The notes under the pieces are model-generated. The model made no database searches. It was not told the origin of the DNA and saw only the letters and a list, made by a program, of their open reading frames with translations. Both the position numbers and the translations under genes were made by a program. A DNA stretch of 39,171 bases, from NCBI GenBank assembly GCA_000388065.2, contig KB932204.1; one strand, 5' to 3'. This DNA comes from Fonticula alba ATCC 38817 (lineage: Eukaryota > Protista > Nucleariida). The first letter of the stretch is position 1; the number at the start of each line of letters is the position of its first letter. Shown piece after piece: positions 1 to 26,231 of this stretch.

Positions 1-55
1 CCCCCCGCCTCTCTCCCGAGCTTTTGTGCGCCCTCCCGCCCCCGCCCTTCGCACG

Positions 56-592
56 ATGTCCTCTCGTCTTGCCATGTCCCCTGTGCTTCTCGGTGCGCGC
101 CTTGTCGGCTCGACCCCGCGCTCGGCAGTTGCCCCGGCGGCGGTGCGCCTCTTTTCCTCCTCTCCATCTGAGGAGCGGCGCCCGGCTGCTGTGGCTTCGT
201 CCGCCGGGCTGGCCATGCGGCCGATGACCCCGGCGGCCTTTGGCGCTTCGCCGGTGCCCGCCATGCCGCCGGGCATCTGGGACGTGGCCATCATCGGTGG
301 CCTGGCCGCGGTGATCATCATCGGTATGTTGCCCTTGCGGTGGGTGGCGCATGTGGCGTTGGCGAGGAAAAGCATGTTGACTCTAACCAATCTACCCTGG
401 CCCTGTGTAGGCCCGAAGAATGTCATCCCCAAGGTGGCCAACATGATCAAGTCCACGCGCGAGGCCATCCAGGACCTGGAGACCGAGGACTCCAAGAAGT
501 CGACCGACAAGCAGGCCGATGCCCCGGCGGCTGGCGAGAAGAAGCCCGAGCCCCCTACCCCGCCGACCGACCCCACCAAGCCCAGCAACTAG
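56..592 (+). CDS. Putative mitochondrion-targeted TatA/TatB-like (twin-arginine translocase) subunit, 149 aa; exons 56-323 and 411-592
   Basis: ATG at 56. The intron 324-410 (GTATGT...CTAAC...TGTAG, 87 nt, in frame) has a donor, branch point and acceptor. The spliced product has an Arg/Ser/Ala-rich, acid-free N-terminus (MSSRLAMSPVLLGARLVGSTPRSAVAPAAVRLF/SSS), then GIWDVAIIGGLAAVIII-GP-KNVIPKVANMIKSTREAIQDLE and a charged/Pro-rich tail. This matches the TatA/B layout of short TM, G(P) hinge, amphipathic helix and disordered tail. Confidence 0.65.
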   Translation: MSSRLAMSPVLLGARLVGSTPRSAVAPAAVRLFSSSPSEERRPAAVASSAGLAMRPMTPAAFGASPVPAMPPGIWDVAIIGGLAAVIIIGMLPLRWVAHVALARKSMLTLTNLPWPCVGPKNVIPKVANMIKSTREAIQDLETEDSKKSTDKQADAPAAGEKKPEPPTPPTDPTKPSN

Positions 593-607
593 ACGCAGGT
601 CCCCCCC

Positions 608-1028: not shown

Positions 1029-4000
1029 TCAGCGCAGGCGACTGTCACGGCTTTGAGCAAGGGCGGCGGTCACCGACGCGGGAACACTTTCCGGGACCTG
1101 GCCAAAGAAGTGCTGCCCATTCAGGGCCGCCAGGAGGAAAGCCCGCCGCGCGCGAAGCCCCTCGCCGGTCGTATGTACCCGGCGTGGGCGGTCGACCGCC
1201 GGCGGTGCGGCGGCCGGCTCGGCGCAGATGGCCGTCGCCGAGGTGGTCTCCACGGTGGCCGCGAGTGCGGCACTCACGCGCCACTGGATGTCGGCCGGTC
1301 CCGCCGGCCCGGTGGCCGCCTGGGTCAGGGTCTCCTGGGCGGAGATGATGAAATTGAAGATGTGTGCCGCCACATCGGGGCTGTGACTGGCGCCCGCGGC
1401 CCCGGCCCCAGCGGCCCCGACCGGCAGGGTCTTGCCCTCGGCCGTGTGCGCGCGCAGGGTCACCGGCAAGGGGCCGAACTTCGGCAAGCGGCCGTACAGC
1501 TGCTCAGCCGGGGGCTGGGTCGAGTCAAAGGCGCCCAGGGGCCAGATGTCGGTAATGCGCAGTGGTGCGGCCGGGGCGGCGATGCCGGCACCGGGTCCCG
1601 CCAGCTCGAAGGCCCCAGCCTCCGATCCGCCGGCCGACCGACACAGCCAGTATCCCTGAAGGCGGAAGTCCAGGGCCAGGTCGCGCAGTGGCTGCATCTG
1701 CGCCGCCGGATGGGCATTGCGCAGTCGCAGCAGGTCGCAAGTGTCGAACAGCAAACGGCACGCCTCGGCTCGTACATATTGCGCCGAATAGGTGGTGCTG
1801 GTGTCATCGGAGCCGGGCCCGGAGGGGGCCGAAGTGCTGGCCATGGTGGACGGGCTGGGGGTCGGCAGGACGAGCGTATGCCGTGACATGTACGATACCA
1901 CGGTGGCCAGAGCCTGGGAGGTGGGCAGCCAGGAGACGATGCCTCGCGCGCGGAAGGGATCCGTCATGCTCAGCAGGTCCACATCCACCGACCGGTGGAG
2001 GTCCCCCACGGCCACGGATCCGGTGAGCAGGTAGGGCAAGGCCGCGGCCAGGTGCTCGCGTGCCGGGACCGGCAACGTGGGCAGATGCTTCAGCAGCACC
2101 AAAACCTTCTCCATGGCCGACAGGTGGACCTCGCTCAGGTCCTCGGTGCAGGTGAGGAAACGCAAGTGACAGGCCAGGAAGCGCAGGGCCTCGCGCGGGG
2201 CCAATGTCAGGCAGGCATTGTGGCCCGTCGGGCCACGAGCCGAGGAGGGGGCAACGGCGGCCGAGGTGGCCGCCAGGGGTTCCGAATTCAGGGCCGTCAG
2301 GAGCGTGGCACAACGCTGGGCATGGAACTTGATCAACTGCAGGACCGTTGGTGAGCGGGCCATGCTCAGGAAGGCCAGCGAGTCGAAGGCATGTCGCAGG
2401 AGACCCCGGCGCATGGGGGCCGACTGGACACCGGCACTGCTGCAGGCCCAGGCGGCCAGGTCGTACAGCTGCTTGGCCAGAGACTCCACGGCCCCGGCTC
2501 CAAGCCCGGCATATGGCGACAGGCCAATGGCCCCCGGCGCGCGGAAGGCCTCCGGCACCAGAGCCAGGGCCAGGGAGGTGGCCCGTAGGGACAGCCCCAC
2601 AAAAGCATCGCACAGGCTGGGAGCGGCGCCGTCAGACCGGGCCGAGGCCAAGGTGGCCCCGAGCAGGGCCCCCACCTCCCGCCGGCAATGCAGGCTCAGC
2701 AGCGGGGCCAGCCACCAGGCCACCACGCCGCCGGCCACGGCCGGGCATCGACTGGCCAGGGACACGGACTCCAGCAGGTCAGTTTGGCAGCCATCACTGC
2801 AACGGGCCCGGCCCAGGAAGCTGGCCGCGTCCAACAGCAAGGCCAGGCTGCCCTCGAGGATGGATTGCTGCACCCCGCGGTGGGCATGGCGCAGGCCGCG
2901 GTCCAATACGGCGGCCAGCTCGCGGAAGATGCCAGCTGTCTTGGTAAGCTGGCTGCCCGGCTGGTCCAGGCTCAGGTCGGTCCGGCGCAGGGCTGCCAGC
3001 AGGATGCGCAGCAGCCAGCCAAGGGCCTCCGCATCATCCAGGCTGACCAGCAACCGGGCCGGGCCGGGGGAGGCGCCGGATCCGAAGGCCGCCGAGGCCG
3101 CGGCCGCCGGGGCCCCAGACACCGACACATTTCGGTCGACATACTCCCCCCCAGGCGGGGGCGACGGGCCGAAGAGGCTCACGGCGGCCGATGACCCCGG
3201 GGCGGCGCCCGCCCCCCCGGGGGGATGGGCCTCCAGGCGCTGGAGCTCCTGCAGGGAAGACACGATGCCCGGCGTGAAAAGCATGCTGGAGAACGGGGTC
3301 GGCAGGGTCATGCCGGCCTGGCGCAAAATGCCAAGGCTGGCATTGAGGGCCCACTCGGCCAACGGGGCCGTGGCATCATCATAGAGGCCAGTGGTGGCGG
3401 CCATGTCCGAACCGGGCCCGGTGGGGATGATGTCCATCCGGGCGTAGCGCCGACCACACAGCGGCAGCCCCGGGGTCCCGGCTGGGCCAGGGTCGAAGAG
3501 CAGCTCCGCCAGCCGGCCGGTACATTGGAGGGTTGTTCGCCGGAGGAGGTCCTGGTCGAAGGCCCGCCGACCTGCCGCATACCGGAGGAGATGCTCCAGG
3601 GTGGGCTCATCACCGGCGAGGGTGGACTCCTCGGGGGCCCCTCCGCCGGGGGGGACCTTGTGGCTGGGGGGGAATTCCCCACCAGCACCGTGCATGGTGG
3701 CAGCGCCACCGGCCAGGAAGGACCCGCCAGCGGAGCTGTACATCGAGCTGGCCGAGGAGAGGAGGCCACTGGCTGTGTCGGCCGCGTTGGAAGTGGAGCC
3801 GGCGGCGGCGGCCGCCGCGGCCGAGGCCGCTGCCACCAGGGCCGCCTGCTGGTGCAGAGCATGCGGAGGTGTGGTGGCTGCCAGCACCGGGGCCGCCAGG
3901 ACATCGCAGAAGTGGCGCAGGGCTCGGTCGAGAGCCGGCTGATAGATCCGCCAGCCGGGGGCCAAGCCGGCATCGGCCCAATCGATCGAAGCGCCACCGG

Positions 4001-7000
4001 CAAGGCGCAGGGGGCCGGGCAGGCCGACCGTCGCGCGATGGTGTGTCCCGAGGACGCTGGCCACCGCGTGCAGCAACAGCCGCCGGGCGGTCCAGCGGTC
4101 ATCAACCAGGCGCCGGTTCCACCGGTCGAAGCCGAGGGCGTCCAGCTGGAAGAAAAGATCCCCATCATCGGCGTCGGCCAGCGGCGGGCTGCAGGCGGCC
4201 AGTAGCCGAAGGGCCGCGTCCACGGGGATCGGCCCGGCCGGCACCGCCAGCCAGAGGAGCGCATCCACCTCGGGGCAGGGGGCCTCCGAGGCCAGAAGTG
4301 TGGCAAGTTGGCCCTGGGCTCGGACCAGGCAAAGGTCAACCTGGGAGGCGCTGGTGCCGGGGGCGTTGCTGGTGGTGGAGGCGCCATGGGCGCCAGGCGA
4401 AGTGCCCGTCGCTCGGGAAGCGCCACCGGCAGGAGGAGTGCCGGCAGCCGGGACGCTGTCGCTAGATGCCACCCCCGGTGGAGATACACCTGTCACATCA
4501 TCAGCGCGCCGACGCTCGACCATGTCCATCCAGTAGGAGGCCGAGGCGCCGGCCGAGGAGCGCCGCGGCGCGTCCAGCGACTCGGACAGCCGCCCCAGGA
4601 CCGGGGATTCGAGCGGACCGACATCGGAGGCATCATCGGCCGCCAGGTCGCCGGTGTCCGAGGGGGCCCCCACGGCCGGACGCATGCCAAGGAGCAGTTG
4701 CCGCGCGCCAGTCGACCCATCAGGTGACATGGCCAGATCCAGGTCCGACCCGACGGCGAGAGGCACGGTGCCCAGGTCATCGGAATCGGAGAAACAGACC
4801 GCCGGCTGTGAATCCCCGGGGGCCAGCTGCAACGCCTCCAGCCCGGTGGCCAAGTCACCGAGATCACGGTCGCCTTGGGACACCCTCGGCGGGGCGGACG
4901 CCGGGGTGGTGGGCCCGGAGATCGGACTGCGCGGAGGCGAATCCAATACCAGCAGGCCGGCTGGCGCATCGGCGAGGGCCGATCCCCGGCGACCGGTATC
5001 CGCCCCACCCGGCACCGACCTGCCGGTGGCCAGTGCCGACAGACGCCCGGGCAGTGGGCCGGCCGTGCCGGCCAGGGCAAAGACCGCGGACAGGGCTCGC
5101 AGGCGCGCCAGCCCCCGGAAGGAAGGGTTATCCACAGGGACACGAGCCCCTCGAGGGAGGAAGGGCAGCCCCGCGGCCGGATCCTGATGGTCCGAGCCCC
5201 CGGGGCCGGCTTCATCGCCGCCGACCATGGCCGACGGCTCGTCATACATGGCGGCCGGGCCCAGCTCCGAGGCGGTTTGCGCGATGTTGGCCGGGTGCCA
5301 GGCGCGAATGTAGTCCGACCCGGTGGCAGAGCCGGGCATGTCGTCCATGGCCAGTCCAAACTGAGGGACATGGCCCAGCCCGAGGATCAGGGCCACGAGG
5401 GCCGGGCTGGCCCAGCGTGCACACCCGGCCAACAGGCGCCGGGAGAGGGGGTGCGCCCCGGCCAGGGGCGAGCTTGTCGCCTGGCCGAGACCGGCCACGC
5501 CGGCATCCGCACCATATGCCACATAGCAGGCGGCTGCCAGGCCGCCGAGCCAGGCCCGGTCCCGGTGCAGGGGGGCCAGGGCATTGGCAAAGCGCCTCCC
5601 CAGCAGGTCCCCCACAGGGGGGAGCTCCAGGGCCGGCAGATGGGTGGCCAATTCCGGGCACAAGCGCCGGCCAGCCTGGCTGAAGGCTCGCATGGAAGTG
5701 TCCAGGTAGAAGCTGTTGCCCAGATGCCCGGCGTCCAGGTCGCCAGCCGAGTGGTCCGCACAGGCGGTTGCCACAAGCAGACTGCCCAGGAGCAGTGATT
5801 GCCCGGCGGAGGCCAGGTCAACCGGCCCGGAAGCCGGTCCCAAGGAGAAGGTTGCACAGAAGCGCAGGCAGCTGGCCCGCTCGTGGGCCGTCCACCAGCC
5901 AGGGAACAGGTGCAGCATGGCCCCGAGCAGGCTGATCACCCGGTCGATGAGGCGACCAAGCACCGGGTCTCGCAGGACATCATGCAACTGCGCGGCCAGC
6001 TGGCCGGCCGGGGCCGCTGCCGCCAAGCTTGTGGCGCCCTCATTGAACAGGGCCACCGCCTCGAGGAGACGCTGCAGGGCCGCCCGTAGCCAGAGGGGAA
6101 TGCTGGCGCCGGGGCCGTCGACATCCGGGAGCACATTGCGCGCGGGGTGCAGGGCGTCACGGCTGCCCTGGAGCAGGGCCACATGCAACAGAGTCAAGTC
6201 CAGGGCCGCATCCGCCTGGGGAGTGCTGCCAAGCAGCCGCCGGACCATGGTACTGGCGCGGCCACCGAGACACAGCCCACAGGCGGGGTCCGGGTCGGAC
6301 AGCTGGCAGGCGGCCGAAGTGCCCAAGCTGGCCGCCATGCAGGGGCGCGCACTCAGCAGGCTCGCGGCCTGGGGCGAGCTGGCCGCCTGGGCCGCAGTGC
6401 CCGGCGAGGGCTTGGGCCCGGGCAGCCGAGCCGCCAGCCGGGCGTCCATATCAGCACAAAGAGCCGAACGCTCGCCAGGCAGACGGCCACCAAGCGTCTG
6501 CCGAAGGTGAAGAGCCGCCTCGAGCAGGGGGACAACCGGCCCGGGCTCCGGGCAAGCCGAGTCGGAGGCTCGCGCCTGATAGTGGGCCTTGAGGGTGCGG
6601 TGGAATGGGCCGAAGCTGGTGGCTAGCAGGGTGGCCAAGCCGGCCGCCGGGTCAGGAGGGGCACCCTCCCCGGGCAGCATGGCATCCATCACGGCGACAA
6701 GGTCCACCGATGGCAGGAAGCTCAGTGCCAGCAGCTGGTCAAGACGCGCATCGGCAGTGACCATCCCGGCGCCAGGGCGAAGCCGCAGGAGCAAGGTCAC
6801 AGCCTCGCAAGTAGCTGGGCAGGGGGCCTGCTCGGGGGCCGTGGCCCAGGCGGTCGACAGGGCCGCCAGCAGGGGCGCCTCCTCGCCAATGTGGTCACGC
6901 GTCAAAAGGGCCGCCACATCCGAGTAAGAGGCGGTGCTCGGCAAGTTCAGGGGACCGCCCTCGAGCAGGAGTCGGGACCGTGCCTCGCGCAGCCAGGCAC

Positions 7001-7327
7001 GCAGCATCAGGAGCCAGTGTGTCCCGGGACGCTTGCCAGCCTCGGCTGCCAGAATGCGCATGGCCTGGCCCAGGGGGATGCCAGCATGTGCTGCCAATCT
7101 GGCCCAGTGTACAAGTGGCGAGCCGGTGGCCGGACCGGCTCTGGCCAAGATGGCGCGACAGGCTTGCTTGGCAGCCGCGTGGTCCATCGACGAGGACAGG
7201 CCGCCGGGATTCGGGTGTTTGGCGGCCAATCGCCGCAGAACGCCGACATCCACACCGGCCTGCGCGGCCATCAGCAACCACCAGGCAAATGAGGGGCGGC
7301 CATGTGCATCGGCCGAGCCGGGAGCAT

Positions 7328-7359
<32 letters not shown>

Positions 7360-10300
7360 GCCGGGCCCTGGGCACTGGCAAGGTCCAGCCGATGCCCGGC
7401 GTCCACGGCCTCGGCCAGAAGCTCGGAAAGCACATGCGCGGAATCCTGGGCCCCAGTGCGCACGGCCGAGCGCCAGGCATCCGCCAGCGGGGCCGGGGCC
7501 GTCCGGCCGAAGCACAACCGGCCCAGGCGCAGCATGGTGTCACGCCAGGCGGCGCGCTCGGACGCGGCCGACATCATGCCAACCGACCCGTCGGAGGGGG
7601 GTCTAATTGCACGGAGGAACCACTGGCTCGCCTCAACCAGGGAGAAGCTGGGCTCCAGCTGGCCGGAGGGGTCGAGCTGCCTGGCGGCCGTGCTGGCTTG
7701 GCGGATTTCCTCCAACCGCGGCCGGGCGGGCAGCGGCAAGTCCGCCAAATACAACAGGGCCCCAGCCCCGATGGAGCATGTGCAGAGGGACAACATCTGC
7801 CGGCAGACCTCGCGCAGGCGAACCAGCGAGCCAAAGGGAAAGACCGCATCCTGGGGAACGGTCGTGTCGGCGGCCCCGCCGACCGGCCGAGCCCACCCCC
7901 CGGGCCAGGTGTCCGGACTGCTTGACAGCAGCAGCAGATATAGCGAGTAAACCGGCAGCAGGGTGGCAAACAGGGCAGCGCACCAGGCCCCGGAGCCCGC
8001 GTCGCCGGCGGTGGCACGGCAGGTGTCCCCCGGGCAGAGAGCGCCAGCCAGGCCACCTGGCGCCAGGCCGGTCTTCCAATCCCCGGTGGCCGGGCGAAGT
8101 GGCTGCAATGCCAGCTCCAGGGCTTGAATGATGGACTCCGGTCGGAGATTCCCCACGGAACAGTACCGGCCCAGAGCAAGCAGCGTACAGGTTAGCTCGG
8201 CCAGGCAGGCGGCCAGGCCGGCCGCCGCGTCAGCCGGGCTCCAATGAAGACCGGTCACCCGGTCGCCGGACAGCAGGACCGGGCCGCGCCAGCCGGTCAG
8301 CCAGCCGGCCGCTGACACGAGGCCCAACTTGTGGAGCTCCACCAGCAGGGCGTCGGCGAAGGCCGGATTGATGATGTCCACCCGGGCGCGCAGGGCCTGG
8401 CGCACGAGCAGCAGCGACACACGCCGAGGCGTGGCCAGCTCCGGGCCCCGGCGGAAGGATCCCAATTGGGGGAAGATGTGCATGAACTGCACGATGACCT
8501 TTTCGAAGGACCCGATGTCCACACCCCCGGCATAGGGGACCAAATCCATGCGATCATCCGGGTCCAAAGCCAAATGCCGAATGGCAGAGGCGCCGGCCTG
8601 GGCTTCGGCCGCTTGCAAAACCCCTTGCAGGGCAGCCGCGGCCCCGCCGCTGGGGAGAGCCGAATCGAAGATGCCCTCGAAGTAAAGCGGCTGACCGGCA
8701 GCGGTCATGGCCATGAAGGCCGACCTGGCCGAGGGGGGAAGATACATGGCGGCGGTACGCCGGCCGAGGGCCAACTCCGGCGTGGCCCCATCGGCCGGGC
8801 TGCCGGAGGCGGACCCGCGCGAGCCGGGTCCCGGGCTGCTGGCCATGGCCAAGAGCACGGAAATGACAGACCCGCAGGCGGCCGGGGCAATGCGTGCGAG
8901 ACTCTGCGCATCGGACAGCAGTGACCGCGAGTAGAGGGAAATATCTTCGGCCGGGCTGCCAGGCGCCGTGGGGGCCGGGCGCTGAGTCGAGTCGGCGCGC
9001 CTGTCGCCAGCTGCCGCCGACCGGTGGTGCTGGCGACGGCGGTGCTCCTGCTCTCGCAGGCGTTCCTGCTCGCACAGGAGCTCCGGAATCAGGCACGACA
9101 GACAGCCGGCCACCGTGGTCACCAAGTGCAGGAAGGGATCGCGCGCGTCTTCCAGGCCGGCCGTCCGTCCGGCGGCAGGGATGAACTTCGCATACCAGGT
9201 GCGATAGGCCGCGGCGATGGACTGCGACAGGCGTCGGTGGGTTTCCAGCGACGAGGCTGCCGCCCGTGGGGGAATGGAGCCGCCGCTGGCGCCGGCGGGT
9301 CCACTGCCAGCAGACCCACCGCTGCCCGAGGCCGTCGGCAATGGCGGCAGGGACCCCGGTCCGCCGGCCAGCGGGACGGCCAACAGCGGGGGCGACTGGA
9401 TGGGCATCTGCTCGGAATCCGCGAACGACAGCCGGAGAGACGCCTCGGCCGCTGGAATCCCGGCCGAAAAGGACACCGGCACCTCAGGCCAAGACCCGGA
9501 CGAGGTGTTGCCGATGGCGATCGACCCGGCAGCCTGGCCATAGCCATGATACGCCGCCAGGGAGGAGATGGCACCGGGAACCGTCAGCCCGCCAGGGGGA
9601 ACCGGGGCCCCCGGTAGCCCGGTGGCATTCACCGGGGCCAGGGTCGGGAGCGACACACCACCAAGCCCGGTGCCCACCGCACCGCCATGAGCCTGATACG
9701 AGTGTACCAATAACAGGGAGGAGGTGGGGCCGGCCCCGGGATGCATGGCTCCCGGGCCCATGGCATAGGTCACCTGGCTGGAGGCCGGGACCGAGGAGCC
9801 AGTGGTACCGATGCCACCGGCCGCCGAAGCCCCGGCGGCGTTGGCCCCCGATCCGGTGGCAGGGCCCCCGGTCGAGCCATTGCCCCCTGGCTGGATGACC
9901 GAAGTGGACAGCGGCTCGCGGATGACATCCGCCGCCGCACGCAGCAGGTGCACGCAGTACCGGAAGAAGGGCCAAAGCCACGTCCGTGAGGGAAGATCCC
10001 GAAGAGCCGAACTCCCAACCCGGCGCAAGCCCCCAGCCGAGAGAGCCAGCAGCAGGCGCATCAGGGCCACATGGTCTTCCAGGCTGAGAGTGACGGCCAG
10101 AACCGGGCCGTCGGACATGACGCCGTCGGCCGATCGGAGGGACGACCCGAAAGCTGACACGGCCAAATCCGCCTGCAGCGACCCGGCAAGCAGGCTGAGG
10201 CAGAAGTGCGCCAGGGTGCGGGTGGCCGTCGGGTCGGCGCCAGGAGGTGGACACGCCAGGAAGGAGGCCGACTGGCCCGGGGCGATGTCGGCGAAGATGG

Positions 10301-13300
10301 CCGGCAGGGCACGAAGGAAGGCCGGATGGAAAGCCAGCGGCGGGTCGGCGTCGGCGTCGGCCGCGGCGCCGGCCGCCCCAAGGCCAGATGCCACGCCGGA
10401 GGACAACAGCGGGAGGCCCTCGGCCGTGTTTTGCCCAAAGCTGGCCAGGCTCGGGTCATCGTGCAGAGCTGCCAGCGCGCGGAGGAGGGCCCGATCGCCG
10501 GTGGCCAAAATCGGCGACTCATCGGCCAATGGTGACAGGTGCACCGCAAGCGGCGTCACCCCGGGGGAAATCGGCTGCCCGGCGAGAGGACCACTGGCAC
10601 GAAGGCATCGGCCATGACGTGCCATCGAAGCCAGGGTCCCCCGCCAGAGGGAGTGCCCCAGGCCAGGAGGGAGGTGCGGCGACCGACCGGCAGCCGGGGG
10701 GGTGGGCTCATCGGGAGCCCCCGGGCCGGCTGGCACCGCGGTGGCCAGGCTCAGCAACAGATCCACCAGGCGGAGGAAGAGCCCGGCTGACTCGCGCGGG
10801 CCGTCTTCCACTCGGCGATCTTGCACCTGGGCCAGCAGTCCGGCCACCAAAGCCCCGGCGCGGTGCTGGTACTGACGAAGAAGGGTCTCCTGCAGGGGGG
10901 CATGGCCATCCAGCTGGGCAGTCTGGCCGGCTGACACATGGACAAAGATGCCAACCTGGAGGATGGCGCGATGGCGAGGGGTGGCCCCACGCGCGCGCGG
11001 GGCTCGCAAGTGCAACCGGAGCAGAGCCGTCAGAGCGCGTTCATTCAGCTGCTCCACTTCTGACAGGTGGTCCGGAAGGAGGACTCCAAGAAGGCTGGCC
11101 GGTGCGAGGGGGTCAGTGGAATGAAGAAAGGGCAGGGGTGGTTTTGGGGGGGGGGGGCGGGTGGCATTATTGCCATAACCGGTGCCAAGCAGTTGACCGG
11201 CTGTACGCACCCCCAGTCCATGCGGCTGAGAAGGTCGACCGCCTCGCTGATCACAAGCCAGTAGGTGCCCTGATCGGAGGAGGCATCCAACACCCAAATG
11301 GCCGAGGCGAGCAAATGGAGCAGCAGGCTCAGGAGCACCCGATGAATGGTGTCCGGCGGGGAAGAAACGGTCGAGGTAGGCCCGAGGACGGCCAGAGTCC
11401 GGAGAATGGCACGCGTGGCCCGGCCACAGGCAGCCAACACCAAGCGCTGACAGACCGGGTCCGCCAAGGATTCGGCCAAGTTCCCGGCGCCGATTGGGCC
11501 GGGGTCGAGCCACGCCGGCAGTGTCCCGGCCCCAGAGAAGCCGGCATTGGCAAGACCGCGTGCGGCCGTCGATAGGAAGACTCCGACCGGCTCGATCCAG
11601 GCCGGGAGAGCGGCAATGCCGGTGCTCCCGGCGGCGGTGTACCGCTCGGACAGGACGGCCAACTGGCCGGTCAGGGCGGCGCCGTACACCGTGCACAGGC
11701 GCCCCACCAGCAGGGGATCACCGACTCCCAGCATCGGCCGAAGGAGTGCCAGGGGAGGGGCTCCGTCCGGGGCTCCGCCCAGGGTGTCTGTGGGCCACCG
11801 TGCCGCGAGGGTCGCCAGGCATTGGAGAGCTCGCACACGAGCCGGCACCGGGAGTCGAGGGAACCGAACCACCGGACGATCGACACCCACGGAGATGAAG
11901 GTCCCTGGTGCATCGGCCCCGGCCAATTGTGCCAAGCGTCGAGCCAGGAGCCCCGGGCCGAGGGGAGCCCCCTGCCAGGCGGTCAGAGCCGTGCGGGCTG
12001 GCGCTCCGGCGGGATCCAGCACCGCCAGCAGGGACAAGATTGTGAGCAGGAGATCCAGAGCCGCGGAGGCCAGGCGCAAATCCATCAACAGGCCTTGCGC
12101 CAGGCGCAAGAGGGCCGCCAGGCGTCGTGGCCATTGGCATTCGGTCGGATCGGCACCGGCCTGGACGCCGACCAGGCGGAGCCAAGTGAGGATTTGCCCA
12201 TCATCCGAAGGGGGAGAAGCCCCGAGGGCCAGAGCATCGGCCGAGGCACCACACTCGAGGGCGGCCACGATTGAAGCCGCTCCGATGTCGACAACGGCGC
12301 GCACCGCGCGCAAGTGCGAGCTAATCACGGCCACGCTGGCACTGGAGGCGGTGGAAGCCGCCGAGTCGGCGGGGCTATCTGGCGGACTGCTCGGGCTGGC
12401 GGCCAGCAGGTCCAAGCAGCCAATAGTCAGGCGATCGGCTGATCCATCATCCGGATGGAGAGCCCGAGTCACATACTCGGGCAGGGGATCCTTCTCGGCA
12501 GCCGGGGAGTCAGGCAACAGCACGCCAAGGATATGCCCATCCAGCATTGGCAGGCAGGACTCCAGGAGGATGTCAACCAGGCGCCCGGTAGAGCAAGCGA
12601 CCGGGGACCATCCGCCGCAGGTCGGCATCTGGGGGTGATCTTCCGGCAGGAAGGATGCCGCCAAGGCAAAGGCCGCCAACGAATCGACGGCCGTGCGCAA
12701 GACCGCCGGATTGGCTGACGACAGGAAAAGCGACTGGGTGAGGGCACTCAGGAGTGGCATGCAGGAGACCGGTTGCGCGCTGGCCGCGAGCTGGGTGGCA
12801 ACCTCCTCCTCGGGCTCGGAGCCGGCGCTGGCTGCCGGGCGAAGGGCAAAGCGCGTAGGGCAGGGGATCATCGAGAAGTAGCCACGGAAGAAGGCAAAGA
12901 TGCTTGGTCCGGCCGAGCCGAGGGTCTCCTGAGGAGAGTGGGAGAGCAACCGGGGCAGGGAGCGGGGAGGGGGGGGGGGTGATCAGATGATGGGATGACA
13001 GACAAGGGGAGGAGATGCTCCATTGCAGGGGGGGGGAATGGAGTGCTGAATCCCGGGAGATGAAGAACGAGGAGAAGGAGGAGGAGGGGAAGGAGAAGGA
13101 GAAGAGGGAGCGCACTTGGAGAGCTGTGTCCGAGGTGAGGGAGAAGAAGCGAATCAGCTGCGGGGTAATCATGGAGGCCGTTCGGAAGGTAAGGCTGGGC
13201 GGAGGGCGTGGACGATTCGGCGCCGGGGGGCGAGGATTGATGGGGGAGTGCTCCAGCAGGAAGTTTGACGCGTCGGAGAGGCTGGTAATCGGCATCGGGT

Positions 13301-14530: not shown

Positions 14531-14790
14531 NNNNNNNNNNNNNNNNNNNNNNNNNNNNNNNNNNNNNNNNNNNNNNNNNNNNNNNNNNNNNNNNNNNNNN
14601 NNNNNNNNNNNNNNNNNNNNNNNNNNNNNNNNNNNNNNNNNNNNNNNNNNNNNNNNNNNNNNNNNNNNNNNNNNNNNNNNNNNNNNNNNNNNNNNNNNNN
14701 NNNNNNNNNNNNNNNNNNNNNNNNNNNNNNNNNNNNNNNNNNNNNNNNNNNNNNNNNNNNNNNNNNNNNNNNNNNNNNNNNNNNNNNNNN
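14531..14790. other. Assembly gap (N run) flanked by poly-C on both sides
   Basis: N run seen directly, just upstream of the HTT-like start codon. Confidence 0.99.
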
Positions 14791-22095: not shown

Positions 22096-22177
22096 GGGCC
22101 GGGCCCAAGCACGGGGAGCGGCCAGCCCCGGNNNNNNNNNNGGGCCGGGCCCAAGCACGGGGAGCGGCCAGCCCCGG
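22096..22177. other. 36-nt direct duplication around a 10-N gap; probable unmerged contig overlap
   Basis: GGGCCGGGCCCAAGCACGGGGAGCGGCCAGCCCCGG occurs at 22096-22131 and 22142-22177, on either side of N10. Confidence 0.85.
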
Positions 22178-25313: not shown

Positions 25314-26231
25314 NNNNNNNNNNNNNNNNNNNNNNNNNNNNNNNNNNNNNNNNNNNNNNNNNNNNNNNNNNNNNNNNNNNNNNNNNNNNNNNNNNNNNNN
25401 NNNNNNNNNNNNNNNNNNNNNNNNNNNNNNNNNNNNNNNNNNNNNNNNNNNNNNNNNNNNNNNNNNNNNNNNNNNNNNNNNNNNNNNNNNNNNNNNNNNN
25501 NNNNNNNNNNNNNNNNNNNNNNNNNNNNNNNNNNNNNNNNNNNNNNNNNNNNNNNNNNNNNNNNNNNNNNNNNNNNNNNNNNNNNNNNNNNNNNNNNNNN
25601 NNNNNNNNNNNNNNNNNNNNNNNNNNNNNNNNNNNNNNNNNNNNNNNNNNNNNNNNNNNNNNNNNNNNNNNNNNNNNNNNNNNNNNNNNNNNNNNNNNNN
25701 NNNNNNNNNNNNNNNNNNNNNNNNNNNNNNNNNNNNNNNNNNNNNNNNNNNNNNNNNNNNNNNNNNNNNNNNNNNNNNNNNNNNNNNNNNNNNNNNNNNN
25801 NNNNNNNNNNNNNNNNNNNNNNNNNNNNNNNNNNNNNNNNNNNNNNNNNNNNNNNNNNNNNNNNNNNNNNNNNNNNNNNNNNNNNNNNNNNNNNNNNNNN
25901 NNNNNNNNNNNNNNNNNNNNNNNNNNNNNNNNNNNNNNNNNNNNNNNNNNNNNNNNNNNNNNNNNNNNNNNNNNNNNNNNNNNNNNNNNNNNNNNNNNNN
26001 NNNNNNNNNNNNNNNNNNNNNNNNNNNNNNNNNNNNNNNNNNNNNNNNNNNNNNNNNNNNNNNNNNNNNNNNNNNNNNNNNNNNNNNNNNNNNNNNNNNN
26101 NNNNNNNNNNNNNNNNNNNNNNNNNNNNNNNNNNNNNNNNNNNNNNNNNNNNNNNNNNNNNNNNNNNNNNNNNNNNNNNNNNNNNNNNNNNNNNNNNNNN
26201 NNNNNNNNNNNNNNNNNNNNNNNNNNNNNNN
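25314..26231. other. Assembly gap (~918 N) likely hiding the 3' exons of PEX5
   Basis: N run seen directly; the PEX5 TPR exon ends at a donor site (26317) whose intron runs into the gap. Confidence 0.97.

Follow-up and report, generated by a model that had tools for sequence, protein, structure and literature searches.

The gene H696_03070 of Fonticula alba ATCC 38817 lies at positions 56 to 592, on the plus strand, of a 39,171-nucleotide stretch of contig KB932204.1 (assembly GCA_000388065.2), this whole stretch being referred to here as the window; it is annotated as encoding a "hypothetical protein" of 149 amino acids (P0001). The gene is nuclear, expressed and spliced, and its product is very probably a divergent member of the TatA/TatB (PF02416) family of twin-arginine translocase (Tat) subunits. 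Together with six relatives, it forms a small eukaryotic clade of this family that is common to Fonticula and choanoflagellates and absent from the literature searched. The reading preferred here, whose chances we put slightly above even, is that this nuclear TatA/B-family gene encodes a protein imported into mitochondria, where it would serve as a TatA/B-type subunit of a TatC-based translocase.

The relatives come from searches of very large sequence collections. Residues 64-130 of the Fonticula protein, compared by phmmer with 1.84 billion representatives, retrieve three true relatives (P0003, P0004 and P0005; expect values (E) of 5.9e-5 to 9.5e-4), and a profile search started from these first relatives adds three more (P0006, P0007 and P0008; E 8e-23 to 5e-13). 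Four of the six are choanoflagellate proteins from EukProt (Hartaetosiga balthica, H. gracilis, Microstomoeca roanoka and Barroeca monosierra) and two belong to metagenomic eukaryotes from JGI; a hidden Markov model (HMM) made from these six non-Fonticula members scores P0001 at 54 bits. A G-P-K hinge, aligned with the bacterial hinge, is invariant in all seven members, and the polar residue ahead of the membrane helix is Asp in Fonticula (D76) and Glu in the other six. The Fonticula copy, which reads D instead of E and GIW instead of GLG, diverges most among the seven. The mature size of the members ranges from 66 to 88 residues (about 80 in Fonticula), and the four choanoflagellate proteins start with MPIG(L/I)GE at the position of Fonticula M70 (MPPGIWD), which suggests that the mature Fonticula protein starts near that residue.

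The two metagenomic members supply genomic context and a second N-terminal extension. P0008, already named TatA by JGI, is encoded on four contigs (L003, positions 2264-2485, and also L004-L006) between the genes for a cytochrome b5 and a mitochondrial phosphate carrier; these neighbours identify the contigs as eukaryotic nuclear DNA and this nuclear context, taken with the Ala/Gly/Pro-rich composition of the choanoflagellate members, points to a nuclear origin of the latter. The P0008 contigs are AT-rich and the nearest clusters of the carrier are opisthokont. The stop called for P0008 falls inside GCT/GTAAGT, a perfect splice-donor motif, and its C-terminus may therefore continue in another exon. 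P0005 (L002, positions 603-908) has an Arg-rich N-terminal extension and is the second member with an extension of targeting type; when read from an internal Met, it carries MLQAFRASRIARA before PFGLGE, a stretch resembling a short presequence. Two further candidates were set aside. The second-best phmmer match (P0002, E 8.7e-10) is a spurious one, a 550-residue repeat protein with no membrane helix whose repeats, containing NLAPKVANRSKGLYQDLETKKFGTKS, match the amphipathic-helix stretch (PKVAN...QDLET) only, eight times, so that a chance likeness appears to be amplified by the repeats; a metagenome locus (L008) was likewise attributed to chance, as no reading frame surrounds its 20-residue match.

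The link of this family to TatA/TatB is made by profiles. P0004 scores 20.0 bits against Pfam TatA_B_E (E 3.9e-4, just below the cut-off of 21) and P0007 15.2 bits; the tatB model TIGR01410 is matched by six of the seven members (best E 3.6e-5), in addition to TatA/E models, and a Rickettsial TatB model by four. In a database of 5.8 billion proteins, the next seven profile matches after the family members themselves (24-28 bits) carry PF02416 without exception. Neither this search nor the two that retrieved the relatives brings up another Fonticula protein. A profile search of the PDB returns TatA or TatB in 6 of its 11 matches, the best being chloroplast TatA (7b7o, E 0.0064); another chain (8h17_A, Tlr1989, E 0.008), matched through an IGPQHVVP stretch inside a 200-residue protein, was treated as a chance hit. 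For a direct comparison of profiles, 80 bacterial tatA-tatB loci provided 70 distinct TatA and 65 distinct TatB N-terminal domains (135 sequences). Aligned with this combined set by hhalign, the family domain reaches a probability of 96.2, a P value of 2.7e-9 and a score of 44.6; the probability is 91.4% with TatB alone and 58.6% with TatA alone. When the alignment columns are permuted within blocks corresponding to the N-tail, membrane helix, amphipathic helix and tail (150 trials), the scores fall to 15.6 +/- 3.2, with a maximum of 26.4, against 44.6 for the real alignment. As these shuffles preserve the layout and score far lower, the match to Tat lies in the order of the residues and not in their composition. 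In the joint alignment, the acidic residue, the G-P-K hinge and the Pro after the hinge stand in register with bacterial Tat, and the family also keeps the hydrophobic residue at the position of E. coli TatA F39 and the acidic patch that follows it.

Among 521 six-frame segments of the window and the spliced protein, an HMM of bacterial TatA and TatB finds P0001 as the only significant match (14.8 bits, E 5.6e-4), the next-best segment being the unspliced frame at 6 bits; by this measure, the Tat likeness of the spliced protein is greater than chance. Direct comparisons of the Fonticula protein by itself give weak matches: BLASTP aligns P0001 with E. coli TatA at 18 bits (pairwise E 0.006), and phmmer against PDB sequences lists chloroplast TatA (7b7o) first, with E 0.12, and a mycobacterial b-delta chain second, with E 0.96. 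In a feature search of the ESM Atlas, the best twenty matches are all TatA_B_E clusters, with a score of 0.79 that is to be taken as a lead only. Pfam finds nothing in the unspliced frame or in each exon separately, and a word-based database search with the unspliced frame finds no protein other than P0001.

The gene model is established by transcripts. Logan contigs from four small F. alba transcript runs (two samples) cover positions 1-600 of the window, which is very GC-rich eukaryotic DNA, and give the following structure:

1-55, plus strand: 5' untranslated region (UTR), where the transcript contigs start; it contains no ATG, and the frame is open upstream, also without ATG.
56-323, plus strand: coding exon 1, from M1 to the first base of the Gly90 codon, as read from spliced transcripts.
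324-410, plus strand: spliceosomal intron of 87 nucleotides with GT..AG ends and a branch-like CTCTAAC motif, splitting the codon of the hinge Gly90; the joint is seen in four of four runs.
411-592, plus strand: coding exon 2, ending with the TAG stop at 590-592, as read from spliced transcripts.
593-607, plus strand: start of the 3' UTR as it stands in the sequence, interrupted by an assembly gap (N run, 608-817).

The contigs of all four runs join 322/323 to 410/411 at GT..AG ends, and the spliced translation of 56-323 plus 411-592 is identical to P0001 letter for letter; the splicing that the original prediction had proposed from the DNA alone is thus matched exactly by both transcripts and database protein. 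The ATG at 56 is the first in the transcript, the contigs beginning at window position 1 or at most about 4 nucleotides upstream, and the last base of exon 1 is G323. The intron, which reads GTATGT...CTCTAAC...TGTAG, is in frame and free of stops, and the frame from the ATG at 56 to the TAG at 590-592 is uninterrupted even when unspliced; retention of the intron would add 29 residues exactly at the Gly-Pro hinge and is seen in no transcript contig of the four runs. The presence of a spliceosomal intron and of spliced transcripts identifies the gene as nuclear, as had been anticipated. The same holds for the host, suspected to be an opisthokont: F. alba is an amoeba related to nucleariids and belongs to the fungal branch of Opisthokonta.

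The gap at 608-817 lies between runs of C and of G and begins 15 nucleotides past the stop codon, so that the 3' UTR is incomplete in the assembly; further N runs in the window are located at 14531-14790, 22132-22141 and 25314-26231. About 440 nucleotides downstream of H696_03070, the opposite strand holds an uninterrupted frame of 3555 codons (1029-11696, minus strand).

The layout read from the DNA in the original prediction (an acidic residue, a short transmembrane segment, a GP hinge, an amphipathic helix and a charged tail) is found in the spliced protein, whose segments are as follows:

56-154, plus strand: residues 1-33, presequence-like and amphiphilic, with four Arg and no acidic residue, ending in R31-L32-F33/S34 (from composition and hydrophobic moment; cleavage site inferred).
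155-262, plus strand: residues 34-69, the Ser/Ala/Pro-rich rest of the N-terminal extension, missing from the choanoflagellate relatives in the alignments.
263-280, plus strand: residues 70-75 (MPPGIW), a short N-tail that aligns with the initial MPIGLG of the relatives.
281-322, plus strand: residues 76-89, D76 and a short hydrophobic helix of 13 residues (from the alignment and a helix at 74-89 in the AlphaFold2 (AF2) model).
411-418, plus strand: hinge, made of the remainder of the Gly90 codon, Pro91 and Lys92, three residues that do not vary within the family.
419-481, plus strand: residues 93-113, amphipathic helix (NVIPKVANMIKSTREAIQDLE; hydrophobic moment 0.44-0.50, helical in the AF2 model).
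482-589, plus strand: residues 114-149, an acidic patch (TED) and then a Lys/Glu/Pro/Thr-rich tail predicted to be disordered (predicted local distance difference test (pLDDT) below 50).

Judged by composition only, the N-terminus resembles the matrix presequence that the original prediction had described, with four Arg, no Asp or Glu in residues 1-38 and an RLF/S motif that fits the R-3 cleavage pattern; its hydrophobic moment is 0.36-0.44, and the hydrophobic core of a signal peptide is absent from the extension. The hydrophobic stretch V77-I89 consists of 13 apolar residues, preceded by D76 and followed by G90-P91. D76 sits where TatB and TatA have a conserved Glu or Gln, and the polar residue is preceded by I-W, as in E. 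coli TatA. The amphipathic helix reaches a hydrophobic moment of 0.50 over residues 92-109. In the AF2 model, built on the family alignment, residues 74-89 and 91-122 form two helices separated by a break at G90, with a pLDDT of about 80 for the first and for the initial part of the second, and below 50 in the tail.

Chloroplast TatA (Tha4; PDB 7b7o, Zea mays Q9XFJ8) is the best PDB sequence match of P0001, its first structural match and its nearest neighbour by language-model features. Like P0001, Tha4 is the product of a nuclear gene, and its cleavable organelle-targeting peptide stands ahead of the TatA domain, where P0001 has its presequence-like extension; the two proteins also share the acidic residue where the helix starts, the G-P-K hinge, the amphipathic helix that follows and an acidic tail. 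In contrast to the chloroplast case, Fonticula is plastid-free and the extension resembles the mitochondrial type; in the Fonticula family, moreover, the helix is longer by one residue and another extra residue comes after GPK, and the likeness is too low for a direct Pfam call. The nuclear-encoded mitochondrial TatB known in plants, oomycetes, ochrophytes and cryptophytes (Carrie et al. 2016; PMC6251230) is also the product of a nuclear TatA/B-family gene, has an acidic residue in its membrane helix and is imported into mitochondria, and it constitutes the sole established precedent for a hybrid Tat in which a nuclear subunit works with mitochondrial TatC; the TatB-positive species surveyed all have a mitochondrial tatC (PMC6251230). 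By its description, this TatB is longer than bacterial TatB and has a long amphipathic helix, whereas the opisthokont proteins are TatA-sized; simple orthology between the two is disfavoured by the mature size of the Fonticula protein, about 80 residues.

The TatA encoded in the mitochondrial DNA of jakobids, cryptists and ochrophytes (PMC6251230) resembles the family in being small and is presumed to be the dual TatA/B subunit of a two-component TatAC system; its genes are mitochondrial, whereas that of Fonticula sits in the nucleus, contains a spliceosomal intron and encodes a presequence-like segment. The N-termini of two jakobid TatA proteins, as given by the primers of synthetic genes (MSLGLGQI in Andalucia and MSIGIGQI in Reclinomonas; PMC6251230, Table S3), resemble the choanoflagellate MPIGLGEL and MPIGIGEG over the eight residues compared. 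The general layout and the key positions are common to the family and to bacterial TatA and TatB (E. coli b3836 and b3838; PF02416, TIGR01410, TIGR01411); the E. coli sequences quoted for both in the original prediction agree with the E. coli K-12 locus. Unlike its bacterial counterparts, the family lacks the conserved Gly of the amphipathic helix and has two one-residue insertions, and the gammaproteobacterial TatB profile fits it better than the TatA profile (hhalign 91% against 59%). By its residues (Glu/Asp, Gly-Pro) and its profile preference, the family thus appears nearer to TatB or to chloroplast Tha4/Hcf106, while by size it would be of the TatA type; the likeliest reading, by analogy with two-component TatAC systems, is that one protein does both the TatA and the TatB jobs.

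From the gene model, its expression and its family membership, as documented above, we infer all later steps of the mechanism. The 149-residue precursor would be made in the cytosol; an N-terminal extension rich in Arg and some 69 residues long would guide it to the matrix via TOM/TIM23 and be removed there, probably by one cleavage behind F33, while the start of the relatives makes an additional trimming near M70 likely. The mature protein, about 80 residues long, would enter the membrane from the matrix, in the manner of chloroplast Tha4, which inserts from the stroma, and would have its N-terminus in the intermembrane space. The short helix D76-I89 would span the inner membrane, leaving the Gly-Pro hinge, the amphipathic helix and the acidic disordered tail on the matrix face. 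The protein would act as a TatA/B-type subunit, D76 docking to the TatC receptor, for the export of a folded substrate, expected to be the iron-sulfur domain of the Rieske protein. A membrane helix and a basic amphipathic helix make up the internal import signal of Bcs1; since the choanoflagellate members have the same helix layout, they might enter mitochondria without a presequence. The route proposed for Fonticula is modelled on chloroplast Tha4 and on the TatB-TatC system of plant mitochondria (PMC8662606). Location in the mitochondrial inner membrane appears probable from the protein sequence; a working Tat pathway with TatC in Fonticula is possible, with chances that we put a little below even.

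Several results weigh against this reading. The TatA/B identity put forward in the original prediction is upheld by the six new relatives and the profile comparisons and is not upheld by Pfam applied directly to the spliced protein: against TatA_B_E (PF02416), P0001 scores 6.4 bits (E 7.3), far under the cut-off of 21, in a match spanning profile positions 2-51 of 53. An NCBIfam scan of P0001 matches no Tat model; its best match, a weak one, is to NF009961, a model for ATP synthase b/delta (E 0.006; 15.9 bits, where the cut-off is 328). Foldseek finds nothing in the PDB with the AF2 model, and among Swiss-Prot models TatA accounts for 14 of the top 30 matches, none of which has an E below 0.26 (not significant). 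As P0001 itself fails the direct family tests, its membership rests on transitivity and profiles; from the direct tests on P0001 alone, the Tat idea would stay undecided. Each of the seven eukaryotic members has a spacing of 13 residues from the acidic residue to the hinge Gly, against the canonical 12 in each of the six bacterial matches measured and, counted from the polar residue, in E. coli TatA and TatB; all seven members also read GPKxV(L/I)P, one residue more than GPK(R/K)LP. The low scores with standard models are explained by these two insertions of one residue each, which also argue for a single origin of the eukaryotic clade, of which the 13-residue spacing is, on these alignments, a shared derived trait.

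The choanoflagellate relatives lack a presequence. The distribution of tatC is also unfavourable: among opisthokonts, the gene is known only from Monosiga brevicollis, Oscarellidae sponges and the ichthyosporean Sphaerothecum destruens, where it is mitochondrially encoded (PMC7194472, PMC7027106), none has been reported in Holomycota, and the sole published mitochondrial genome of a nucleariid, that of Nuclearia simplex, has no tatC according to its description (PMC7194472). The Fonticula proteome was among those that Petru et al. (2018) searched, and they list no Tat component for it (Table S2), a negative result readily explained by the Pfam score of P0001, about 6 bits. Our literature search for a link between Fonticula and TatC or twin-arginine found nothing. 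On the other hand, tatC in the mitochondria of M. brevicollis, Oscarellidae and Sphaerothecum indicates that the opisthokont ancestor had a mitochondrial Tat. In the literature, mitochondrial TatA and TatC are described as always mitochondrially encoded, TatA never being nuclear, nuclear Tat subunits are placed only in plants, stramenopiles and cryptophytes, and opisthokonts are credited with TatC only (PMC6251230, PMC8662606), while a further article makes no mention of opisthokonts (PMC13673990); this agrees with the view, expressed in the original prediction, that such a pathway was undescribed for opisthokonts.

The scarcity of tatC raises the question as to whether the protein is a true mitochondrial TatA/B-family member that has lost TatC and is now a relic, or has been recruited to another job in the inner membrane, such as membrane remodelling, stress relief or assistance to Bcs1 or Oxa1. 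We consider this rather unlikely, yet it draws on the same evidence of family membership as the translocase reading and accords with the lack of any tatC report in Holomycota (PMC7194472) and with the state of the Fonticula member, the most divergent of its clade, with D for E and no direct match to any Tat model. Against such a loss, surveys find TatA-type proteins only alongside TatC (PMC6251230), the docking and hinge residues (the acidic residue at the helix start and G-P-K) are conserved across Fonticula and choanoflagellates, and the gene is expressed. That a TatA/B-family protein might instead reside outside mitochondria, for example in the endoplasmic reticulum or the plasma membrane, its extension being no matrix-targeting signal, seems improbable: the four choanoflagellate relatives do begin directly at MPIGLGE, and targeting is judged from composition, but the Fonticula extension is Arg-rich, acid-free over 38 residues and amphiphilic, with an R-3 motif and no signal-peptide core, P0005 also has an Arg-rich extension, and the only membranes in which Tat systems are known are energised ones of bacterial origin (PMC13673990).

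Least probable is a protein unrelated to Tat, that is, a small single-pass mitochondrial protein, such as a stalk remnant similar to ATP synthase subunit b or subunit 8, that would have come to resemble TatA by convergence. Its support comes from the weak matches of P0001 to NF009961 and, in the PDB, to the mycobacterial b-delta chain, at the values given above. NF009961 is matched by one of the seven members, against six of the seven for Tat models; identity with ATP synthase b/delta was rejected, as the six members other than P0001 have no such match. The family profile finds TatA/B in the PDB and no ATP synthase chain, shuffles that preserve the layout of a membrane helix and an amphipathic helix score far lower than the real alignment, and the helix predicted after the membrane, of about 30 residues, would be far too short for a peripheral stalk.

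Whatever its partner, H696_03070 reveals, in a lineage where it was not expected, a new and divergent branch of a known family and illustrates that short divergent Tat subunits can escape standard HMM annotation. As for its history, we tentatively suggest that a TatA/B subunit moved to the nucleus before the split of Holozoa and Holomycota and survives both in choanoflagellates, as the partner of mitochondrial TatC, and in Fonticula, a scenario that we hold to be possible, with chances clearly short of even. If it is true, mitochondrial Tat in opisthokonts neither shrank to "TatC-only" nor vanished, Fonticula would be the first fungal-side lineage with a working mitochondrial Tat pathway, and its protein the first nuclear TatA-sized subunit dedicated to mitochondria. 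Those "TatC-only" systems that have been tested failed to transport substrate, and how they work is an open question; a nuclear TatA/B-type family provides a concrete candidate for their missing subunit and makes the problem testable, since the candidate can be approached by complementation with its cognate TatC, as for the jakobid TatAC pair. The finding also raises the question of whether a fungal-side lineage uses Tat beside or instead of Bcs1 in the assembly of complex III, and certain relatives of animals and fungi may have retained a larger share of the ancestral mitochondrial Tat machinery than was assumed.

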